From: Hyphochytrium catenoides
Lineage: Eukaryota > Protista > Hyphochytriomycota
Assembly (NCBI GenBank): GCA_900088475.1
Contig: FLMG01004571.1
Coordinates: 62,001 to 126,000 of the forward strand
Direction: 5' to 3'
Length of the DNA: 64,000 nt
The stretch's first letter is position 1. Each line of letters starts with the position of its first letter. The notes under the pieces are model-generated. The model saw only the letters and a program-made list of their open reading frames with translations. It was not told the DNA's origin and did no database searches. The position numbers and the translations under genes are program-made. Shown here one piece after another: positions 2,054 to 56,829 of this stretch.

Positions 2054-4536
2054 TTACCAGTGCTTGTCTGAAGATGCACTGTCTCCAAGAGCTACTCCTG
2101 GTACCACGATGGGCTTGTCGACATGGAAGCGATGGCATTCCTGGTAGAAGTTCCTTGGAATCAGCTTCGACAAGAAACGCTAGGCGTCATGAAGGCGAAC
2201 ACGTGTCAGTCATGGAGAGCAAGAGGTGATGAGAAAGCATCAGCAAGCTGGCGGCAGAAGACAGTTAGATGAGCGCATTTTGCATCTAATAATTGATAGA
2301 GGCCGTGGGCTTAAAACGAGCTCAATAGAAAATATTGCGGTCTGAACAAGCAACAGGCCGAGAAAGGAACAAGCATCGATTGGACAAGGAACTCACCTCC
2401 AAGTCAGTTAATGACACCAGGCCTTGCTCATCAGCCTCTGGTAGCTTGATGACATTCCAATTATAAAGTATGCGCACGGCATAGTCGTCTCTACCGCTGT
2501 CCTTACTGGAGGAAGAAGCAGAAGGCTCTTTTCGATAGAGTTCGAAGACGACATTAGCAGCATAAGGCGGCCAGTGTGGCTCATAAGCGCCTAAAGCCTT
2601 GAGTAGGGGTAGAATGGTGGTGTCGTGGCCCGAGTAGATATAGAGCTGGCGCTCGTCGTCGCCGTGAATAATATTCTCCATTCTAGAATAAGTGCCAGGA
2701 TAATGCCAAGTCAGACAATAATACGGAGACGACTGTCCTGTATAGAAGCATCACCCATGGCTTCCGCTAAGACAGCTAGATGAGGATGGAAAGACAATGC
2801 CAGACCTGTTCAGTAACTCGCCGAGAAGCCCTCCTATTGAGAGCTTCAGGAGCTCGACACCCTCCCTGGTCTCTCCGTCACCCACTAGCCCAGAGATGTC
2901 GTGCACTGCGATTTCTCTAAGATACACACGAATTGGCTCGCGGCAAGTGGTGCATTGGCAGAAGACATGCGAAGGGAGAGAGAGAGGAAGATGGACATTC
3001 TTCACCTTCTACTAGGATGGAGGTCCTCATGGCAAAGACCGGCAAGCTACACACTAAGCAAAAGGAAAATAGATAGAGTTCTACATAGGACGAGAGGACG
3101 GGGAAAGTAGGGCCAGAAGTACAAAGAGCACTTACCTCACTTGGGCGACAAGATCATGCGTCACTCCTGGCGGTAGTGCTTTGCCGTGAGCCACCCGAGA
3201 GGAAAAGATGTCATTCAGAGCGATGGCGTCCAGCTTCAGCTCCGAGGTGCCCAGCAAGCGGTTCATCTTCTCCAAAACGGAAGCGGAGTTAGAGTGGGCG
3301 ACTTGCTCACTATGCACACAGAACAATGGTTGTCAGCAATCAGCTCACGCAGCCAGAGAAGACGAAAGATTTCTTTCACATAGCTATCTCTCCTCCCCTC
3401 CCTTTCAGATATCTCTCGTGACCTCCTCCTCTGCTTTCATAGTCTCTTTCGTTGAACAAATGGCCCGCAGCTAAGCGCGCGTTCTTTCTGTTTCTAACGT
3501 TTTATCTCTGACAATTGATCGTTTGGTGACCCCTTTCTCTGTTTCATGGTCCTTTCGTAGCTCTGCCTCATTACCTCCTTCTCTTCTTCACGAGAAATAA
3601 GAGCTGCGGGCAGTGTCTTCCATTAGGATACACCCACTCAGCTTCATCCTGGACGGTGCGCACTGCTACCGTCCCTTCTTGTCCAGGATAAAGACCCACC
3701 AACGTCCCGTGTGCACTCTCAATAGTGCGCGATAGATTGGAGCTTCGCACTGAAAGCTCTGTTGGGACGAGGGAGGGAGAAAGGAGCCTGGTCTGTTCAA
3801 CATAGCGTCTATTCAACGCAAGAACAGCAATAGAAAATTGCAGAGTAAAGAAGGGTTAGGCCGTACACAATGAACCGCACGTGGAAGAGAGATAGTCCCG
3901 GGAGGAAGGAACGAAGATGGAGAGCGCCCAGGCCCAGTGAGAAATGGGAAGTGACAGAGAGACAAGATTAGGTGAGCGACAGGACCACGGTGAGAGAGAA
4001 GTCGGTCGGCCTGGCAAGTTAGAAGGGAAAAGAGAGTCACAGACCAAGCGGGGAACAAAGCGGGACAGAGTCATAGAGCGATGAGGAGTGGACAGTAGAG
4101 CTAGAGAAGCGTACCGGCGGAGCTCTTCACCTAACTCCACCGTCTGCCGCCATCCCAGGTCTGACAATTGTCCACTATGGCATCCTCCAGGGAGACTCTT
4201 CGCTCTCTGTCTCGCATCAATCTTCGATGGCGGTCGAGGATGGCCATCTATCTTAAGGATCTGTATCGATGGCTTCATCTGCTGGTTGAACTCTCGTTCC
4301 TTTCCGCAGACGTCCCACTGCACTTCTTCCTGATTTGGAAGTGAGTTCAGCGGACTTCGAGCGCCATGTCGAAGCACCACTTGCACGTGTACGAGCTGGT
4401 ACTTTGACCCATTGGAGGAGAGAGGAGAAACTCGTAAAGGGCCTTCTCTCTTCTCACAGTGACTGAGAATAGATCCTCCGGAGAGCAGGGCGGTGAGGGA
4501 GACGATCCCAGAGCGAACTAAGCAGGCGCGTTGCAT
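2054..4536 (-). CDS. ACP6: Histidine acid phosphatase, ACP6 (lysophosphatidic acid phosphatase type 6)-like, multi-exon
   Basis: VQVVLRHGARSP (RHGxRxP), GQLSDLGWRQ, VRSSNLSRTIESA, YSGHDTT (HD motif), WPPYAANVVFELY. Last exon reads RFLSKLIPRNFYQEC...KHW*. N-terminus looks like a targeting sequence. Confidence 0.85.
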
Positions 4537-8878: not shown

Positions 8879-10692
8879 ATGTGTCAGCATCCTGTCTCTG
8901 ATCGCAGACGAGCAGATCCAACTGGTATCGAGCAGTTAAGAGGGAAGACACTTCTGTTAGTCATCTGTGGCGGAAAGACACGAGAAGACATCCTCTCCCT
9001 CTTTAAAAGGCTAGGGTTGCGGCTACTCTGCCTCGACGTGGAGAAGAAAGAGTGGGCATGCAAGTACATTTCAGAGTGGATCATAGGCCCTGCTCAAGAT
9101 AAAGAACAGGCTTTAGAGACCTTGAGAGAGCACTTTGGTCTCGGAGAACACGGAAACCTCGTACCAGAGAACACCGATGACAAAGTCCCGCTTTCTCCCA
9201 CCTCTCATCTCTCGCCCTCTCTTACCGCTGCCCTCTCCTCGCCCCGTCGTCCTCCCTTTGACGCTGTATACTCCTACGATGAGTTCGGAGTGGAGACTGC
9301 AAGTTGGATAGCAGAGAGCCTTGGGCTACACTGCATTCCCCATGACATTGTAAGCGTAGTGAGGGACAAGTACTCCTTCCGCGCGCTCTGTCAAAGCCAT
9401 GGCATCCGGGTTCCTAGGCACTTCAGAGGAAGACTTGACCAGCAGGATGGAGAAGAGCTAGCAAGTGGGAGAGAAGGAGCGAGAAAGGCCCTGGAGGAGC
9501 GATTGCGAGCGACGTTAAGGGAGAAAGAGATGACCTTTCCTCTAGTCTTCAAGCCTACTAAGGGAGGAGGAAGTAGGCTCGTAAGGAAATGCTGGACGCT
9601 CTCTGAGCTCTGCGAGACAGTCCGTGAGTTCTATATGGAGGCCAAGACTCAGATGATGAAGGATTTCCACCTGACAGAAGAGGACTGCGACCAGTGGATG
9701 GTTGAGGAGTTTATACCTGGTAACGAGGTAGATGTGGACTGCATTGTGCAGGTAAGATCTGGGTCTTGCCTCTCCTAACCTTTCCAAGGTACTTTTATTG
9801 CTTTGGCGTGCAGCTCCTCCTCTCCGTTTGAATCTTACGGAGTAGACCTGTGAATTTGGTCTCATTTCATGCAATCTCTCTCTTCCCACTCTGCCTCTCT
9901 TCACCTTCACCCTTTCCGTGCCTCTAGCCCTAGCGGCTCGTGGCCTGCGTACCTATCCTTTGAACCTGTGTGCTTAAGCCTCACTTCTAACTCTTTCCCT
10001 CGTCTCTCTCTTCTTTGCTCGTCTTTTCGATTCCCGGCCTTCGGTTCCCAACCTCACATCTTTCGCAGGAAGGACAGCTTCTCTTCTTATCGATCAGCGA
10101 CAATAAGGGACACAATGACAAAGAGATCTTCTTCATGGAGAAAGGAGGGTCCTGCCCTTCAGTGCTCCCTTCTGAGTCTCAAGATGCCCTCCGGACCTTG
10201 ACATCAGACGTTCTTCGCATGTTTGGGAACAGATTTAGCGGAGTGATTCACTTTGAAGCCAAAGTGGCACATAGAGAAGCGTTTCCAATAGAGTTGAACC
10301 TCAGGATAGGCGGAGCAGAGACCTACACGATGGTGAAGACCGCATGGGATGTAGATTTAGCTGAAGCAGCAGTCATGTTGGCGTTTGGCCTGCCTCTTCC
10401 ACCCACGAAGTATCCGTCAGATGCCAAAAGGCACGCAGCTAGCATCAATTACGTGCCCGACTGGAAAGGGAAGGGCCGCTTGGGACCAATCTTGGTGGAT
10501 AGCGCGCTATATCGCGATCCCAGCTTTGTGAAGCAAGTCTTTTACTTCGGCCAAGGAGATGTTTTGCGGTGTCCTCCCGCAAATTTTGATTATCTGGGGT
10601 GGTGCGTGGCAAAAGGACCGTCCCCTGATATTGCGGAAGAGAACTTAGGAAGGTTGACCAGACTTGTAAGCTTCAGTTTGTCTCCCTTATAA
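8879..10692 (+). CDS. ATP-grasp domain peptide/amide ligase (carnosine-synthase / L-amino-acid-ligase-like); true start unresolved
   Basis: DAVYSYDEFGV, VRDKYSFR, FPLVFKPTKGGGSRLVRK, WMVEEFIPGNEVDVD, GVIHFEAK, PIELNLRIGG. One GT-AG intron (about 9752-10068) joins ORFs 8879 and 10015. Confidence 0.85.
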
Positions 10693-16891: not shown

Positions 16892-17020
16892 TAAAGAGCG
16901 AAAGAGGGTGAGAGAGGAGAGAGAGGNNNNNNNNNNNNNNNNNNNNNNNNNNNNNNNNNNNNNNNNNNNNNNNNNNNNNNNNNNNNNNNNNNNNNNNNNN
17001 NAGAGAGAGAGAGAGAGAGA
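16150..17020. repeat. GA-rich microsatellite tracts including an assembly gap (N 16927-17001)
   Basis: Directly visible. Confidence 0.9.
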
Positions 17021-17133: not shown

Positions 17134-20100
17134 TTAGATGCCCCAGAGGCTTGGCTTCTCAGTCATTTTATTAGCGAGTTTCTGCTGCTGCTCCATCGTG
17201 TCTGTGGCGGTCTGCACCCGACCCTGAACGCGTTGAATCGTCTCGGTGCTCTCCACTATCTCCTTGTTGGCATAGTCAGCCTGAGAGCAGCCAGAACGAG
17301 AGGAGATAGTAGAGCAAGTGTGTGGGCGAGAGACAAAGAGAGAGAAAGAGAGAAAGAGAGAGAGAGAGAGCAGACAGGTGGTTAGGGAGCAGCAGCATAC
17401 TAGCGCTCCAAGGCAAAGGGAAGAGGGGTAGAACCTAATGGCATGGGAGGGAAGATGAAAGATCCTGAAGGCAAAGGAGAGAAAAGCCATAGGTCTTCAG
17501 ACGGGAGAAGGACGGAGATCGAAAACCTATCGATGAAGGGAGAGAGCAGTCTCGCTTGCAATGTCTCGAACTCTTTTGCTTCTCTCTTTCTCTATTCTTC
17601 GGTTTCTCTACTCTCTCTCTCTCTGCCACTGGCTCTCCCTCCTCTCTGTCTCTCCTCTTTGGTTTCTTCTTTCTTTCTCTTCGCATTTCCTATCTCTCCG
17701 CCCTAAACAAGCAGTCGGGCTCCCTGTACCATTCTAGCTCCACCCTCTCTCCTCTCTGAGTTCTTCCCAAACACGACGTCTCAGTCAAGCTCTTCTCACC
17801 AGCTCCTTCATGTCCGAGAGGCACCTGGACAAGTTGGCAAGGTCGCTGTTCTTAGAGTTTTTTAGCTTGTTCGCGAGCTCAGGATTCTTCAGGGCCACGC
17901 GGCTGATAGCCGCCTGCTTCACCATCCCTTTACCCTTACCAGCCTGGAGTGACATGTGAGACAGAGACCGATAAAGAGGAAGACACGTGCAGACAGACAG
18001 AGAGTGAACCAAGAGCAATAAAGAAATCAATCCGTACGACAGAGAGAGAGAAGTTGGGAAAGCCAGAAGAGAGACACAATTGATCGCCGACGCTCAAGTT
18101 AGCAAAGTTCGAGAGCAACCTACTCCTCCTCCTCGGACTGCAATGTGAGAGGGAAGCTCCACAGTTGGTGGTGGAGAAGCTTCCACAGCAGCGCGCTTAC
18201 CTTGGTCATTTCCATCTTCTGTCTCAGCAGCTGCGCCTTCTTCCTCTTGGCCCACTCCACATTGCTGCTGAAGTGATGGGTTAGAGGATGCGCCATCTGC
18301 TGAAGAATGTTGCCGCTTTCCTCTTGAATCTTCTCAATATCGTCGAGGTCCTGGTTGATCTTCTCCAGTTGCTCTATAGCGGCCCGGAAGAGATTAAGGG
18401 ATGGTGCAATAAAGCGCGGGACAAAGAGAGAAGACGGGAGAAGTTAGAAGCGAAGAGCGAAATACTCCTCTAGCTCTAGACCGATGGGTCTTATGCTGCT
18501 CTCTGCTGTTGCCGCTTCTCCTTCCCAGCTAGGTCCCCTATTTTCGTTACAGTTTGGCTTCTGTCTGTGTGTCTCTCTCTCTCACTCGCTCGCTCTGGGC
18601 ACGCGCTCTCCCGCTCTCTGACGCCTGTCATCTCTGTTTCTCTCGTCCGCTCTCTTTCGTCATGTTGCCCCTTCTGTGTCACTCTTCTATGACTTGCTTC
18701 CTCAACTCCCACCTCTATTCCTATCTAACTCTGCGTTCGTCGACTTCATGATCGCGGAAGTTTTCTCTCCTACTGCCAAGGCCTTTGCAATGTTATTGTC
18801 GAAGGTCTTTACATTCTTCTTCAGTTCAGCCTGCAAACATTCATGCGGCGAGACGACAGAAGATGGTTAGGTTTGGCGGAGGTAATGGCATCTGCAGAGA
18901 ACAGTGAAACAAGTATGTGGGAACTAGATCGTAGAGGCCAGCAGAACCGATAACGAGGATTAGAGTACCTGCTCTTGAGCTTTGGCACTTGAGGCCAAGA
19001 GACCTCCATCGTCAGCCGCACCAGGCCCTCCAGAGTCTCGCCGATGCACTGTTGACCGCAGGAGAGGCAGTAGAAGAAAAAGGGAGAAGAAAGTTAGGTT
19101 CTTCTCTTCACATCTTTGTCTTCGACTCTATCGCTGACCGATGGTCTGTTCTCCTACTTACATTCTCTAGCCTCTGTTGCGGTGGAAGTGTCCGCCCTCA
19201 AAGCCTGAAGCCATTTCAGTTGCTGGCCCTTGTCATCCAGATAAGCAGCTGTCTCCACCTTAGACTCATTAAGCTTGTGACCTGGCAGGGAGCGCAGAGA
19301 CACGATTGAATTAGTCATTGAAGAGGTGGCGTTTTTTGGAGGTTTTTTCAATAGCAATAGGGCAATCCGCAGAGAGTAGAGTAGGCGTCAGATGGCTGCG
19401 GGACCATAGCGCGCAGGAGATACCGCCAAATGCCACAGAAGAAGGATGAGAGTGGCCCGAGAAGAGAAACATGAGGAGAAAGCGAAGGAAAGGCTATTTA
19501 TATAGGGATAGCTCTGTCCCTGGGTGAACAAGTGCTTCACAAGGACCTGGAGGAAGCGGGGAGAAAGCAGAAGAACAAAAAGAAGAGGATAATGAAGAGA
19601 GGGAAATAAACCGAAGCAAAAGAAGGAAAGAGAGGGAAAGCGAGCTAAGTTGCCGTCAGACCATAGAACTTCAGTCCGTAAGGCTTGACGTCTTTTTTGA
19701 TGATGGTGCCAGTTTCAATTTCAGTGGCCTCAACGCGGTCCAGGATGAAGGCGCCCTTTGGCGGTGCGCCTCGAGTGCAGTCTGCTTCCGTGTCCCAGTA
19801 CATAAAGAGCTTTGACTCTGTCTCATACTTGCAATAACAGCGTTTCCAAGCCTTCCCCACAAGGTCATCAGCTTCAAATGGCGACGGAAGGACATATGGA
19901 GAGGTAACGAGCAGTGCAAGAATCAGTATTGGCGAGGAGGAGCTGCAGGCATACATAAAGGTAGAAGCACACTCCATTATACAAAGAGAGAGAGAGAGGG
20001 AATAGGAAGAGTAAAGCACAGGTTGAAGAGAAGATAATCGCGCAAGCCGACTGAGGCGGAACTCCCAGGCTTCCCCAGTCGAGCCCTATAGCCCTCCATG

Positions 20101-20462
20101 CTCTTACATTTCTTCTTCAAGTAGCCTTCAAAGCCATCCACTCTGGCCTGAGCTGAGCTATGCCCGTCCATCCTTCCTGACCCTTTCCTCAACTCCACTT
20201 AGATGTTAAGAAAAGCGTCCAACAGCCACGGAGCAACCTTACAGCAAAGGATGGACAGCTCAGCACTCGCTTCGACAGAATCCGTAAACTTGAGGAGCTT
20301 TCTTGAGGGCTTGGTGACTATGAGGACCAATTGGATCGAAAGAAAGGAAATGGGCAACAAGGAAGGGATAAGAGAAAGAAGAGGGAGATTGGTATGAGGT
20401 CAACCACTCCTTGCTGTCGATGTTGGCTCCTTGCTTCTCGAGGTCTGTCTCTTCTCCATCAT
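17134..20462 (-). CDS. PH-domain-containing SNAP-25-like Qbc-SNARE (start may instead be the ATG at 20171)
   Basis: PH motifs FEGYLKKK..VGKAWKRCYCKY..LFMYWD..PKGAFIL..QQLKWLQAL. Exons 18830-18713, 18373-18201, 17943-17800 and 17280-17134 splice in phase and encode two heptad motifs that align without gaps to the SNAP-25 Qb and Qc helices. No transmembrane segment. Confidence 0.8.
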
Positions 20463-20589
20463 GAACCGTCCGTCACCCAGATCCTTTACCTATATCTAAG
20501 TTGTTAGGAGCCTTGCCTCTCCTTCCAATCGCTCTACTGGAGCTCTTTCCCTTCTGTCGTTCCTCCTCTTCAATCGTTTTTTTCAATTT

Positions 20590-20780
20590 GTACCTTACTC
20601 TCCTCTCTCTCTGTCTTTCTCTCTCTCTCCCTTTATCTCTCTCTCTTTCTCTCCCTCCCTCTCTCACTCTCTTTTCTCTCTCGCTCTCTCGCTCTTCATC
20701 TCTTTGTCTTTCTCTTTCTCTCCCTCTCTTGCTCTCTCTCTCTCTTGCTTTCTCTCTCTTTCTCTCTCGCTCTCTCTCAC
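20590..20780. repeat. (CT)n microsatellite in divergent intergenic region
   Basis: Directly visible. Confidence 0.95.
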
Positions 20781-21484
20781 TTGTCATGAGGAGTAGCAGC
20801 TTCATTGATGATGAGGCGTTACAGCAGCTCCAATTCCTTCACTTCTGATAGCGGCTAACGCTACGCAGACGCCTGTTGGGAGCATACTACTACATACGCA
20901 CATAAGGACGAGCCTTTGACCAGTAGAGTCCTTGTTCTCCCACAACAGCAGCAGGAAAGGATCAAGAGGTCATGGTCCAGGCTGATCACTGACCACTCTC
21001 TGAAGGATCTCAAGCACAAGGACATCGTAGTTCAGCACAGCCTCTGCAGTTGGGGAGGACCGAGAGTCCTTCGTCCGTTGCCTTCTTCTTCTTCGTTCGG
21101 TCTGTCATTTATTGACTTCCTCTCCGTCGTCTTGGACATTGTTATGGGAAGTGTTGAGTTCGCACTTGACAAACAGCAACGTTGGTCGTAAGTAGTGGTC
21201 TTTCTAACTGCTGGGGCCGTGATAACGTTACTTCCTTGATCATACGACGCCTGCTATCCGCTCGTCAGCCATCCCACTTGCCCTTGGTGGTCGCAATAAC
21301 GAGAAGAGGAGTACTAACGAGAGGAGGAGTACGATCATACAAGGAAGGAGGACCAGTTAAATTATATATAGCTAACGTCATTAACCCTCTCGGCGTGGAA
21401 CAACAAAAGAACCAGCCTGTTGGTATCATCGCCCCACATTGCATCAGAAGTTTCTTGGACGAGCGAAAAAAAGGAACATCGAAC

Positions 21485-22075
21485 ATGCAAACGCGTAACC
21501 AGAACAGTGGACGATCATCAAGTTCACCACCAGCCCCCAAGGAGACTTCCATCGGGATCCTAGCCATCAATGGCAACGGCGATTTCTTGGTCATTCAGCA
21601 GACGCACGGACACCATTGGACTTTCTCCAAGGGTCATCCCAAGCGTTCAGAAGTAGAGATCCAGACAGCTCTGCGTGAGCTCAAGGAGGAGACCGGACTT
21701 ACAGTCAAAAGCTTTCTCTGGGTCGACGAGAAGAACCACCCACAGTTTATCCCTCATCACGAAGCCAAGCCGCAAATTCATGAGAGCCAAGCCGGCGAAT
21801 GCTTGCCAAGGCATCCGCTCATAAGACTTAGCCAGCAGTATCTAGTCACGAAGAGACGGAGCACTCACATGAAGCAAAACCATTTTTTTGTTGCCATCGT
21901 TAATGATGACCCAGTGCGCCTTCAGCCAAAAGAAGTGAAGGATCACAAGTGGCTGCCAGCAGCAGAAGCTGAGGCACAGCTCACATTCGAAGAGGACCGT
22001 TCTCTGCTGCGCGAGACCACGGCGATCATCGACAGGCTTCCCACAGCCTCAAGGACAGCTTCAGCTTCAGAATAA
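21485..22075 (+). CDS. Nudix hydrolase, Ap4A hydrolase (NUDT2)-like, intronless
   Basis: Perfect Nudix box GHPKRSEVEIQTALRELKEETGL preceded by HWTFSKG; C-terminal EVKDHKWL..EA...LTF. First ATG is 21485, although the frame is open from 21182. Confidence 0.85.
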   Translation: MQTRNQNSGRSSSSPPAPKETSIGILAINGNGDFLVIQQTHGHHWTFSKGHPKRSEVEIQTALRELKEETGLTVKSFLWVDEKNHPQFIPHHEAKPQIHESQAGECLPRHPLIRLSQQYLVTKRRSTHMKQNHFFVAIVNDDPVRLQPKEVKDHKWLPAAEAEAQLTFEEDRSLLRETTAIIDRLPTASRTASASE

Positions 22076-24016: not shown

Positions 24017-25841
24017 TTAGGAAGTGATCTGCTTGATTCCAAGCTCCCGCTCATAGAACTCTGCGGTAAACTTATCACAAGAGGTAAGCTCGAGCTGTCT
24101 TCCGTAGACAAAGACAGAAGTGCCACAGCGCAGATCTTCTTTAGAGACAAAGTCCATGACTGGTCGTTCTCTCCCACGAGGTGTCTCGTGCCCTGACGGT
24201 ATAAGAAGTGAATCCTTTGGAAGCCGCTGCCTCTTCAGCAGGAGAGGAAAATGGTCCTTTCCATCGTTTTTCTGTCTCCTCTCTGCCACCTCAATAGTGT
24301 CATCACCTAAGAAGTAATGCAGACGATAGTGTTGGTAAGCTCCCTTCTTTGTTCCGTCTGCGGCAATGGTCCCCGCCGTGTTATCCTGGCAATCGCGTTC
24401 GACATGCCCGTCCTTTCTTTCCCAGTGTACGCAGTCGAAGGCGAGGACCTGGTTCTCATATTTGATGTACTTCTTCAGCTTCAAGCTCTGGGACGAGGAG
24501 GACGACGAAGAGATAGAGATTCCGTCGTTAGCCGCTTTGGCACTTCTCCTGGGGTCCATTGTGTCTCTCTCTCTTTTCCTTCCTTCTTCGTAGCTATCCA
24601 AAGGACATTCTTTGGCCTCCGACATTATTAAGCCCATCTTCTCCTTCATAAAGCTCCGGGTCTTAGGGTCGCAATCATAAATGTGAACCAGCAGGGAGGA
24701 GGACGGGGAACTAAGAGCTGAAGAAGAAGGAGAGAGGTCAATGCTCTTTCCTATAAGTAGATCCTCCGGGCAAAGAAGACCCTGTGGAGAAAGCAGCTGC
24801 GACCGCTTAAGAAATGCTCCTTGGAGAAGTCCACTGTTCTCCGTCTTGGGCTCTGTAATACTTACAGATCTGTCTTCCAGGTGATAGCGCACCACGAGCT
24901 TTCGAACTCTTCTTTCTCCTCTTGTTGAGCTCTCTTTCCCTTTGGTCCTGGCTCTGTCAGTCAGTTTCCTTACACCGACCTCTCTTCCGCGCTCCTCTTC
25001 TCCTAATAGCTCTATGGTGTAGGCGTGAAAAGATAGGACTTTGCCCCCGTTCTCCAACCAATCTGAAGGCTTCACTTTGACCCTGTGATTCGCTGGCCGA
25101 ACAGGAAGAGCTGGACCATTCGCTTCCTCGCGGGCTTCCTCGCTCTCTCTGCTTCTTCCTAGCGTTTCATCCCTCTTTGCTGCGTAATTAGATTCATGTT
25201 CATGCCTTCCCTCTCGCTCTTCCTCTAGGGCAGGGCTCACCAAACCTTGCCCCTTCCGCTGAGGGGAGGAAGATTCGGGCTTGTGGATTGAGGAGGACAC
25301 TGAAGAAGATACGGCTGGAAGACAAGGAGAAGAACTGATAACTGAGAGGCCACATCCTAGGTAATGTTCCCCAAGCCTTAAATCTTCCAGTTCCTTGTAG
25401 ATTAGGTTTTTCTTCCTGTTGTCGGTTGGTCCTTTCTGTCGGTCTTCCCCTCTTTCCTTATTCACGACCTCTTCTTCCAGTTTCTTTGGTGCATTATTCA
25501 GGTTGGGCAGTGCAGATGATGTTGTGGCCTTTCGCTTCTCCCGCTGCTCCACAGCCTTGTCGAGATATAGCGGCTGTGAGGAGTATCTTGATTTCCCTAT
25601 GTCCTGCAGGAGGTCCGAATGGCCACGGCGGAGAGAAGGCAGACGGGGACATAAGGCCCAGAAACCAGGTGTAATTTGGTCATTAGAAACAACGAGTAGA
25701 CAAAGAGAGAAGAGACGAAGCGCCTGAAAGAGGAGAGAAGCTTACCTCTAACACTGGCATCACATGTCTTGTCAGGCCAGGAAGTAGAGGGAGTTTGACT
25801 TTGTCTCTAGGAAGAGTTCCTTCTCTCCTCTCCATCGTCAT
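24017..25841 (-). CDS. EFHC1/Rib72-like DM10-domain protein (two DM10 domains), 2 exons (25841-25746, 25603-24017), about 560 aa
   Basis: N-terminal LPLLPG motif. DM10-1: KVLSFHAY..YHLEDRSVSITEPKTENSGLLQGAFLKR..IYDCDPKTRSF. DM10-2: QVLAFDC..YFLGDDTIEVAE..NDGKDHFPLLLKRQRLPK..DLRCG..VYGR..CDKFTAEFY. Confidence 0.85.
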
Positions 25842-47700: not shown

Positions 47701-48264
47701 CAGCCCTGCTCCCAGTCACTGCCGCTCTCCTCTGTCAGGAGAGGACGTAGGCTTGTCTCTAAGAAGACTGTCCAGCTGCCGTGGGTCTGCTCTTCGCCTT
47801 TCAGCTTTGAAAGTGGAGTTCGACGCTGCCAGATCTTGATTGCGGGTAGGTCTCGGAGCAGTTCCTTAGATTCANNNNNNNNNNNNNNNNNNNNNNNNNN
47901 NNNACTTCCACTTGCTGCAGCTTTTTGAGAGCAGAAAAGGAAGTTCAACCACGAAGCTTCAGCAATGAATCTTTCACAGGATTAGAAACCTTCAATATTG
48001 CTTCCATTCCTTTGGGGCAACCCATTCTCGCTTGAAACCTTGACGACGGAAAGCTCTGTGAAAGAAACCTTCGTCACACGTCGGCATTGTCCATCGATGC
48101 AAGCGTGAGACCACGTTATTTTCAATGAGGAGAGCCTCATTCGGGATCCGAATGATGCGGACCGAACCCAGTAACGGACCGCCCCAGCCGCAGGAGGACA
48201 AGAAAGATCATGAACCACCAGGCGCGAGGAGGAGCTGATGATGATGGCAGGGAGGAGAGACAAC

Positions 48265-54800: not shown

Positions 54801-56829
54801 AGTCCGACGAACAGGTCCGGTTGACCTTTTACCTCCAAGGAACGCCTTTAGTTTCCCAGCTGGTGTTGCCTTCTCTTCTTGCTCTCTCCGGCGTTGGTCA
54901 CTTCCACCTTTGGTTCCACTTTCTCTTCGTTTGTTTATTGGAGCAGCCTTCTGATGGTGCTTATTATTCTTCCTCGAAGCTGGGTATGAGCTTTGTAATC
55001 GAGGTTAAGCGACTATCTCTCTATGGAGCGGTTTTTGCAAGGCTTTGTCGTCTCAGACTCGCTCAGGTTATCCTAGATCTCTTATGCCCTTACCTCTGTT
55101 GCATCCAGGCGCGAGCCTTCTTGGCTCGAATCGATAGTCTGGACCAAGCCTTGAGGACCAAAACTTCCATGGTTGAGGATCTTCACTTACAGATAAACAA
55201 GCTGGAGATGCAAACTCAGGTAGAAGAGAATTGAATCAACTAATTGGGAAAGCAATGGATAGGAGAAGAAGTGCAGAGGGAAGAGGAGTTTTAAAGGATC
55301 AGAGAATGTGTGACTCTAAGGCAGTGAATCAATAAGGGCTTATAGCAAAAGTGAAGGGCTGGCTTTAAGCACGTGGCGGGAGAGGACCACTTCGTCAAAC
55401 GACAGATAGTTCAGACTGAAGGCATCGAAAAAGGCAGTAGTGCGGAAGCAACCAACAAGGCCTTTTTATCCCATTCAAACAGCAAACTCAGGAGGACCAT
55501 TTGAGTCTTCTCAAGACGATTGAAGACGAGCACAGGAAACTTTTAGACCGGGAGAAAGCTGCGCACGCTGAAGCCTTACAATCCTTGAAGACCCAGCATC
55601 GAAACAATGTGGAGAGCCTGACTGGAGAGTTTAATGCGTCAAAGGTGCTCTGTCCGAGTACCTCCCTTTACTCTATCCCATTGCCTCCTCTGTTGGCCTC
55701 GAAAACATGCTCTCCTCGTTGTCAGCGGCCTCACACCTGTGGCGCTCACTCTCTACTTTGATCTGTGATTTCTCTGAAGNNNNNNNNNNNNNNNNNNNNN
55801 NNNNNNNNNNNNNNNNNNNNNNNNNNNNNNNNNNNNNNNNNNNNNNNNNNNNNNNNNNNNNNGGTAAGCTTTCCTTCTTCATCTAACTTTGTTCTTCTTA
55901 CTAGGTGTAGCTTGGTCGTTTGCCTCGTGAAGGCTAGTCTCTCACTGTCTTTCTTTGCTGCCCCATGTCTCTTCCCTAGGATGTGGAGTTCATTCAGGCT
56001 CTACAGCAGCAGATGGAGTTACTTGTCAAGTCAGAGAGAGAGGCGAGAGAGAAAGTGGAATATCTGAAGAGAGAGCTGCACAACCGGGAGGAAATGTACA
56101 ATCAGAAGTTTAACGTATCACCTACCGTGGGCTTCATGCAGGTGTGAACATGGAACAAGCAGCTTTTATGCCTTCGAGATAGTGCCTTATAATCATCTTT
56201 CTCATCACTTACTGTCTGCTATAGTCTCTGGCTCTTGCTCTCTCTCTCTCTTTTTCTTTTGTCAACTATTTCCGATTTTTGTAAATGACTCTCATTCCTT
56301 GGACTCTTGCACCTCGGGATATCTGACTACTTTGTATGAAACAACAGGTGACCAAGCGCAAAGGAGAGTCGACGCCACAACGTCGGACACCTCTTGAGAC
56401 TCCTAAGATCAAGCCCATTAAGCCAGAAAGAGAGCGGCCTCAGCCAGAAGAAGAGAGTAACAATAACAGAGGAGAGGTACACAGCTCTTTCTTGTGGCTG
56501 CATTCTCTCATACCATTCCTACTCCTTGCGCACCGGTGACGGTAATTATAGTGCAAGGCAGCTTGAGGAAGTTGATCGCCTCTCTCTTTCTCTCTGTACA
56601 TCTTTTCTCGAGGCATACCCTATCCTCTTTGTCTCTCTCTCTTCGCTACCTCTTCCATATATATTGCCCCCGTCCAACCTCTGTCTTTTATGCTACAGCA
56701 GACGTTAGGGTTCCCTCCTCTCTCCCCGAAGACCAGCCTATCTCCACCTTCATCGGGCTCAACGGCACCGCAAGACCAAATCGGCAAAGAGAGACTGTCC
56801 TCAGGACTCTCCAGAGAATCGCAAGTTAG
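48823..56829 (+). CDS. FAM184-like long coiled-coil protein, >20 exons (one inside an N-gap)
   Basis: N-terminal KMSKKIAQLTKVIYSLNTRNED and C-terminal KRELHNREEMYNQKFNVSPTVG match FAM184A/B conserved motifs; intervening exons are E/K/Q-rich coiled coil. Confidence 0.82.

Follow-up and report, generated by a model that had tools for sequence, protein, structure and literature searches.

The locus considered here raises two questions: whether a series of separated minus-strand open reading frames in Hyphochytrium catenoides belongs to a single spliced gene, and whether the product of that gene could be a SNAP-25-type (Qbc) SNARE bearing an N-terminal PH domain. The window, that is, the whole stretch of 64,000 nucleotides analysed (contig FLMG01004571.1), consists of eukaryotic DNA with about 50% G+C and with GA/CT-rich introns. 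All coordinates given below are positions within this window.

A spliced eight-exon gene on the minus strand

Eight minus-strand exons, running from 20171 down to 17134, form one spliced gene model, and the spliced product read from the ATG at 20171 comprises 351 amino acids. The seven introns measure 236, 380, 113, 138, 339, 257 and 519 nt. All of them start with GT and end with AG (7/7), and the codon phases are compatible at every junction, which bears out the initial annotation in its proposal that the gene emerges only after splicing. The features of the locus, in the direction of transcription, are as follows.

20172..20462, minus strand: 5' stretch, probably 5' UTR or promoter, without coding signal
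20108..20171, minus strand: exon 1 (coding part), ATG and strand beta-1 of the PH-like domain (..GYLKKK)
19662..19871, minus strand: exon 2, core of the PH-like domain, 69 whole codons; codon LLR +0.18
19162..19281, minus strand: exon 3, last strand and C-terminal helix of the PH-like domain, the helix with Trp (..KWLQALR..)
18969..19048, minus strand: exon 4, Gly/Ala/Asp-rich spacer, 26 codons; codon LLR +0.12
18713..18830, minus strand: exon 5, helix 1 layers -7 to 0 (its N-terminal half); codon LLR +0.32
18201..18373, minus strand: exon 6, helix 1 layers +1 to +8 (its C-terminal half, ending at 18294)
17800..17943, minus strand: exon 7, last 34 linker residues and helix 2 layers -7 to -4; codon LLR +0.25
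17134..17280, minus strand: exon 8, helix 2 layers -3 to +8, the helix ending at 17164; codon LLR +0.26

Coding signal was scored as a codon-usage log-likelihood (LLR) trained on open reading frames elsewhere in the window, several of them real genes (NUDIX, DM10, ATP-grasp and LAL_C2). In its proposed frame each of the eight exons had a positive LLR (0.12-0.32 bits/codon), this frame was clearly the best in seven of the eight, and values were close to zero in all frames of all introns. A check of the plus strand of the gene region for a competing gene revealed no consistent coding signal. Exon 1 ends in phase 1 at the donor GTAAGA and scores +0.24 bits/codon in frame. Exon 6 also encodes the first 31 residues of a basic linker, helix 2 begins at 17841 within exon 7, and exon 8 also holds a nine-residue tail and the stop codon TAA at 17136-17134. 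The spliced gene exists as such in the sequence. Its least certain element is exon 4, because one other frame of this exon scores as well by codon LLR; the length of exon 4 exactly carries phase 1, in which exon 3 ends, to phase 0, in which exon 5 begins.

The 5' boundary differs from the one drawn initially, which had extended the gene to 20462. Three pieces (20462-20406, 20315-20244 and 20195-20172) can be joined in phase through introns of 87 nt and 45 nt, and the resulting N-terminal extension from an ATG at 20462 was considered as a candidate and not adopted. No codon bias was found in any of the three pieces between 20462 and 20172, the 45-nt intron compares with 113-519 nt for the introns modelled, and a stop codon stands in frame shortly before the ATG at 20171. 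On these three grounds the start at 20171 is likely, and the earlier extent is not retained.

The same exons could also be read as two genes, with a PH-only gene (exons 1-3) lying head to tail with a separate two-helix gene. Read-through from exon 3 into intron 3 meets a stop after two codons, so that a PH-only gene could possibly end at this point; the ambiguous codon bias of exon 4 would fit such a division, and the searches described below found no homologue to support the junctions as read from the DNA. Set against this, the open reading that leads into exons 4 and 5 lacks an in-frame ATG before helix 1, the only Met being inside that helix, at layer -3. The pieces are moreover separated by just 113 and 138 nt (introns 3 and 4), too little to accommodate a terminator, a promoter and UTRs, and the phases remain compatible across exon 4. 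We therefore favour a single transcript on three points, namely the missing ATG, the short introns and the phase fit of exon 4, and consider a wrong gene model of the two-gene kind very unlikely.

The PH-like domain, the helices and the linker

The product is ordered as PH-like domain, Gly/Ala/Asp spacer, helix 1, basic linker and helix 2. The N-terminal PH-like domain is split over three exons (1-3). When exon 2 was searched alone, its best Pfam match was PH (PF00169), with an E-value of 0.019 and 15.9 bits against a cut-off of 25.1; this match covers profile positions 16-63 of 105, exons 1 and 3 being too short to score. The second match was PH_CERLI1 (E 0.064). On either side of this core, exon 1 encodes a strand of beta-1 type (GYLKKK), and exon 3 contributes the C-terminal helix, which has its usual Trp (KWLQALR). 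Exon 2 match, exon 1 strand and exon 3 helix together cover the PH profile in order, so that by direct reading the PH sequence pattern appears complete across the three exons, with a Pfam score that stays below the cut-off. The PH domain proposed initially is thus kept in a reduced form: the pattern over exons 1-3 and the top rank of PH among the Pfam matches speak for it, but the score of exon 2 does not reach the threshold, and we call the domain PH-like.

A phmmer search of the PH-core exon against PDB chains gave no match, and the AlphaFold2 model of exon 2 alone was unusable (pLDDT 48). The beta1-beta2 region of the PH-like domain is basic (KKK...K.WKR), and for this reason binding of acidic lipids is plausible.

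To describe the two helices, we placed the SNARE layer frame (layers -7 to +8, spaced 3 or 4 residues apart) on each of them and scored the hydrophobicity of the layers relative to the remaining residues against 20000 shuffles. In helix 1 (18791-18294) the layers read I A G T M T L N L I L I Q S L M, with a register z of 3.6 that was reached by 3 of the 20000 shuffles. In helix 2 (17841-17164) they read L L L M A A I S I V V A M Q A M, with a z of 4.8 that no shuffle reached (0/20000). Both helices, quoted already in the initial annotation and recovered here when read across introns 5 and 7, span about 53 residues and are amphipathic, with an unbroken 16-layer heptad register. The single chain thus holds two 16-layer motifs of about 53 residues, whose Qb/Qc order is putative.

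The central layer is Asn in helix 1 (codon 18719-18717) and Ser in helix 2 (codon 17250-17248), and the central Gln expected in both helices of a Qbc SNARE is absent from both. In helix 2 a single placement of the 16-layer frame scores best, and it is centred on this Ser. For helix 1 a frame shifted one heptad earlier, with Thr at its centre, scores equally; the Asn-centred frame is preferred only because an EQLxxI stretch comes right after that centre, which we take to resemble the Qb helix of the SNAP-25 family. The weak layers of helix 1 are G, T and T in its N-terminal half together with the polar Q (+5) and S (+6), and helix 2 has a polar residue at layer +6.

The linker between the helices fits its initial description as short, Lys/Arg-rich and Cys-free: it has 65 residues, with 15 K+R and 4 D+E (net charge +11) and no Cys, is low in complexity and lacks strand-like hydrophobic runs. 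A search of all exons for a TM-like hydrophobic stretch found none (maximum 19-residue hydropathy 0.58), as had been claimed. The linker is long enough for the helices to lie parallel, as in a Qbc protein without a TM anchor, and the product ends nine residues past helix 2.

Searches for SNARE signatures and for relatives

Profile and structure searches of the individual exons returned no SNARE. The SNARE-family Pfam models matched none of the helix exons (5-8) at E<=10, and phmmer of exons 5-8, each searched separately against all PDB chains at the same limit, found no SNARE; NCBIfam returned nothing for the five exons searched. The PDB chains searched include many SNARE complexes. The PDB matches that did appear for exons 5-8 were restricted to poly-ubiquitin, carbonic anhydrase and an oligopeptidase, and were discarded as noise. 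Searches at the exon level are less powerful here because introns cut both motifs, helix 1 right beside its centre.

ESM-Atlas look-alikes point in a different direction, with scores under 0.9 classed by the tool as leads only; shuffled proteins often reach 0.8 or more. For exon 8 the ten best named look-alikes all belong to the SNARE clan, and they include V-SNARE_C, SNARE and Sec20 clusters at 0.81-0.86. Exon 6 drew an unnamed cluster (0.90), followed by PF00835 SNAP-25 (0.88) and PF12352 V-SNARE_C (0.86). Identities to SNAP-25, counted by hand on the strings with which the initial annotation had proposed a gapless alignment, amount to about 15/55 and 11/55 for the two helices and were not used as evidence.

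The Qbc assignment made in the initial annotation therefore holds in part. The 16-layer registers, the central polar residue of each helix, the EQLxxI stretch and the SNARE-clan look-alikes argue for it, whereas HMM and PDB searches at the exon level yielded no SNARE match. As far as the sequence can be read, a SNARE (Qbc) identity of the helices is plausible.

Relatives were sought more widely. An exhaustive phmmer search of the PH-core exon (69 residues) against 1.84 billion representative proteins, a collection without the proteins of the present genome, retrieved no relevant relative. Its sole match (E 2e-4) was a 763-aa His/Tyr-rich repeat protein aligned over 23 residues, which we regard as noise. 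Two metagenome scans, one with the PH core and one with exon 6, found no relative, and a word search with the PH core was blank; full-length kin lie beyond the reach of word searches of exon length. These searches yielded no sign of conservation. PH domains diverge fast, and it does not follow from blank searches of this kind that the gene is an orphan.

Known proteins of similar layout and the competing readings

Animal SNAP-47 offers an instructive comparison. It has an N-terminal PH domain (predicted, and now partly validated), followed by a Qb helix, a region of about 175 residues that folds as a second PH domain, and a Qc helix. SNAP-47 lacks a poly-Cys region, attaches to membrane through contacts of its PH domain with phosphoinositides, binding PI(4)P, PI(4,5)P2 and PI(3,4,5)P3, and is a fusogenic Qbc SNARE; one phylogenetic survey treats it as metazoan-specific. 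The present product resembles it in placing a PH-like domain and then two helices in one soluble chain, with neither a TM segment nor a Cys cluster. It differs in its linker, which is basic, has 65 residues rather than about 175 and contains no second PH domain, and in its central layers, which are Asn and Ser. Moreover, SNAP-47 is an animal protein and the present host is not an animal; the likeness described here is one of layout. The predicted layout is accordingly SNAP-47-like, with a short linker of SNAP-25 length and one PH domain only.

The wider family of SNAP-25, SNAP-23, SNAP-29, Sec9 and SNAP33 provides a second point of reference. Its members share with the present product two helices of about 53 residues, a linker of about 60 residues and an end just after helix 2, and the likeness extends to the EQLxxI stretch that follows the helix 1 centre, and to the presence of PF00835 among the atlas look-alikes. 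A Cys cluster is usually absent in SNAP-29, Sec9 and plant SNAP33, and in this respect the present protein is like these three and unlike SNAP-25 and SNAP-23. It departs from the family in the added N-terminal PH-like domain, in the replacement of both central Gln residues and in the lack of a significant sequence match at the exon level.

Taken together, we read the locus as one eight-exon gene for a divergent, soluble, PH-anchored Qbc (SNAP-25-type) fusogenic SNARE of about 351 amino acids, and put the chances of this reading at about even. In such a protein, the PH-like domain and the basic linker would dock the soluble chain on an acidic or phosphoinositide-rich membrane and would provide its membrane attachment in place of palmitoylated cysteines. 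The two helices could then lie parallel, the 65-residue linker permitting, and would combine with a syntaxin (Qa) as well as an R-SNARE, neither of which is found in the window, to build the four-helix bundle that powers fusion. At the centre of this bundle, Asn and Ser would take the positions that Qb and Qc usually fill with Gln.

An alternative interpretation would see the product not as a SNARE but as an adaptor that joins a PH domain to a two-helix coiled coil of the ordinary kind, whose helices dimerise or bind some other partner and resemble SNAP-25 only through a generic heptad appearance. The failure of any SNARE HMM or solved SNARE to match a helix exon is in line with this, as are the missing central Gln in both helices and the ease with which shuffled proteins attain atlas scores of 0.8 or more. 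Against it stand an unbroken series of about 16 layers with one polar residue at the centre in each helix, a unique best frame placement in helix 2, a linker of SNAP-25-like length and a protein end nine residues past helix 2; in addition, two separate exons independently draw SNARE-clan rather than other coiled-coil families. We hold the adaptor to be unlikely, while giving it appreciable weight. If it were correct, the gene would encode an ordinary orphan PH protein.

The helices might also be SNARE-like in form and regulatory in function. A PH-targeted soluble protein could bind syntaxin at the Qb and Qc positions so as to restrain fusion or set its timing, much as amisyn and tomosyn use an R-type helix to do. 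Amisyn (STXBP6), which binds SNAREs and carries an N-terminal PH domain, is recruited through PI(4,5)P2 to fusion sites. It has one R-type SNARE-like helix and acts as an inhibitor or competitor. The present product is likewise soluble, with an N-terminal PH-like domain, putative SNARE-type helices and no anchor, and the replacement of both central Gln together with the polar layers (+5 and +6 in helix 1, +6 in helix 2) would suit such a role. The resemblance is limited by the helices themselves, one of R type in amisyn against two in putative Qb-Qc order here. Furthermore, SNAP-47, with the same layout, is fusogenic, and non-Gln central residues occur in working SNAREs, such as Ser in Bet1 and Asp in Use1. 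A regulator of this type appears quite improbable to us, and the fusogenic Qbc SNARE remains the reading that we prefer.

The initial annotation had further suggested a lineage-specific new architecture, and this suggestion is weakened: a combination of PH, Qb and Qc without a Cys cluster is not new, because animal SNAP-47 already has this layout. Our literature search found no PH-bearing Qbc SNARE described in oomycetes, hyphochytrids or apicomplexans. It is conceivable, if rather doubtful, that a stramenopile PH-anchored Qbc SNARE was built independently and is convergent with SNAP-47, its central Gln residues having given way to Asn and Ser. The central layer of the fusion complex would in that case be 1Q:1R:N:S.

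If the protein does function as a SNARE, it would be the first SNAP-25-type protein with a PH domain to be described outside animals, as far as the searchable literature goes. This would imply that a lipid-binding domain replaced palmitoylation more than once, or did so far earlier than thought. A complex lacking two of its three central Gln would, in addition, provide a test of the role of the 3Q:1R arrangement in assembly and in NSF-driven disassembly.

Ends of the PH-helix gene

Upstream of the likely start codon (ATG at 20171) of the PH-helix gene, a minus-strand gene whose product carries a PH-like domain and two SNARE-like helices, three short pieces at window positions 20172-20462 (-) can be joined in phase from an ATG at 20462, the start proposed in the initial annotation, across introns of 87 and 45 nt. 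Codon bias, measured as a codon-usage log-likelihood trained on other open reading frames of the window, was absent from all three. They could be exons of the 5′ UTR or could encode an N-terminal extension under weak constraint.

At the opposite end, an assembly gap of 75 N (16927-17001), with (GA)n repeats on both sides, lies ~130 nt beyond the stop codon, indicating that the 3′ UTR is incompletely assembled. Further N runs occupy 47875-47903 and 55780-55862.

Neighboring coding stretches

Domain searches identified the following features in the window:

3859-4536 (-), open stretch matching histidine phosphatase superfamily branch 2 (E = 1.8e-7)
8879-10689 (+), two adjacent open stretches matching ATP-grasp_4 and the L-amino-acid-ligase C-terminal domain
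21182-22072 (+), NUDIX-domain ORF, a clear match (E = 2.6e-15)
24020-25552 (-), 511-codon open stretch with two DM10 matches (E = 2.6e-39)

The two stretches at 8879-10689 are probably exons of a single ATP-grasp ligase gene. DM10 domains occur in EFHC/Rib72-type flagellar proteins, and their presence here fits a flagellated organism.

Shared intergenic region and repeat tracts

The PH-helix gene and the NUDIX ORF are divergently transcribed and share a CT/GA-rich intergenic stretch of ~1 kb (20172-21180). Microsatellite-like GA/CT tracts are abundant in the introns and flanks of the PH-helix gene (17300-17800, 18400-18700, 19320-19660, and 20560-20780); when translated, they produce extended Ser/Leu or Glu/Arg stretches, which crowd the list of ORFs.
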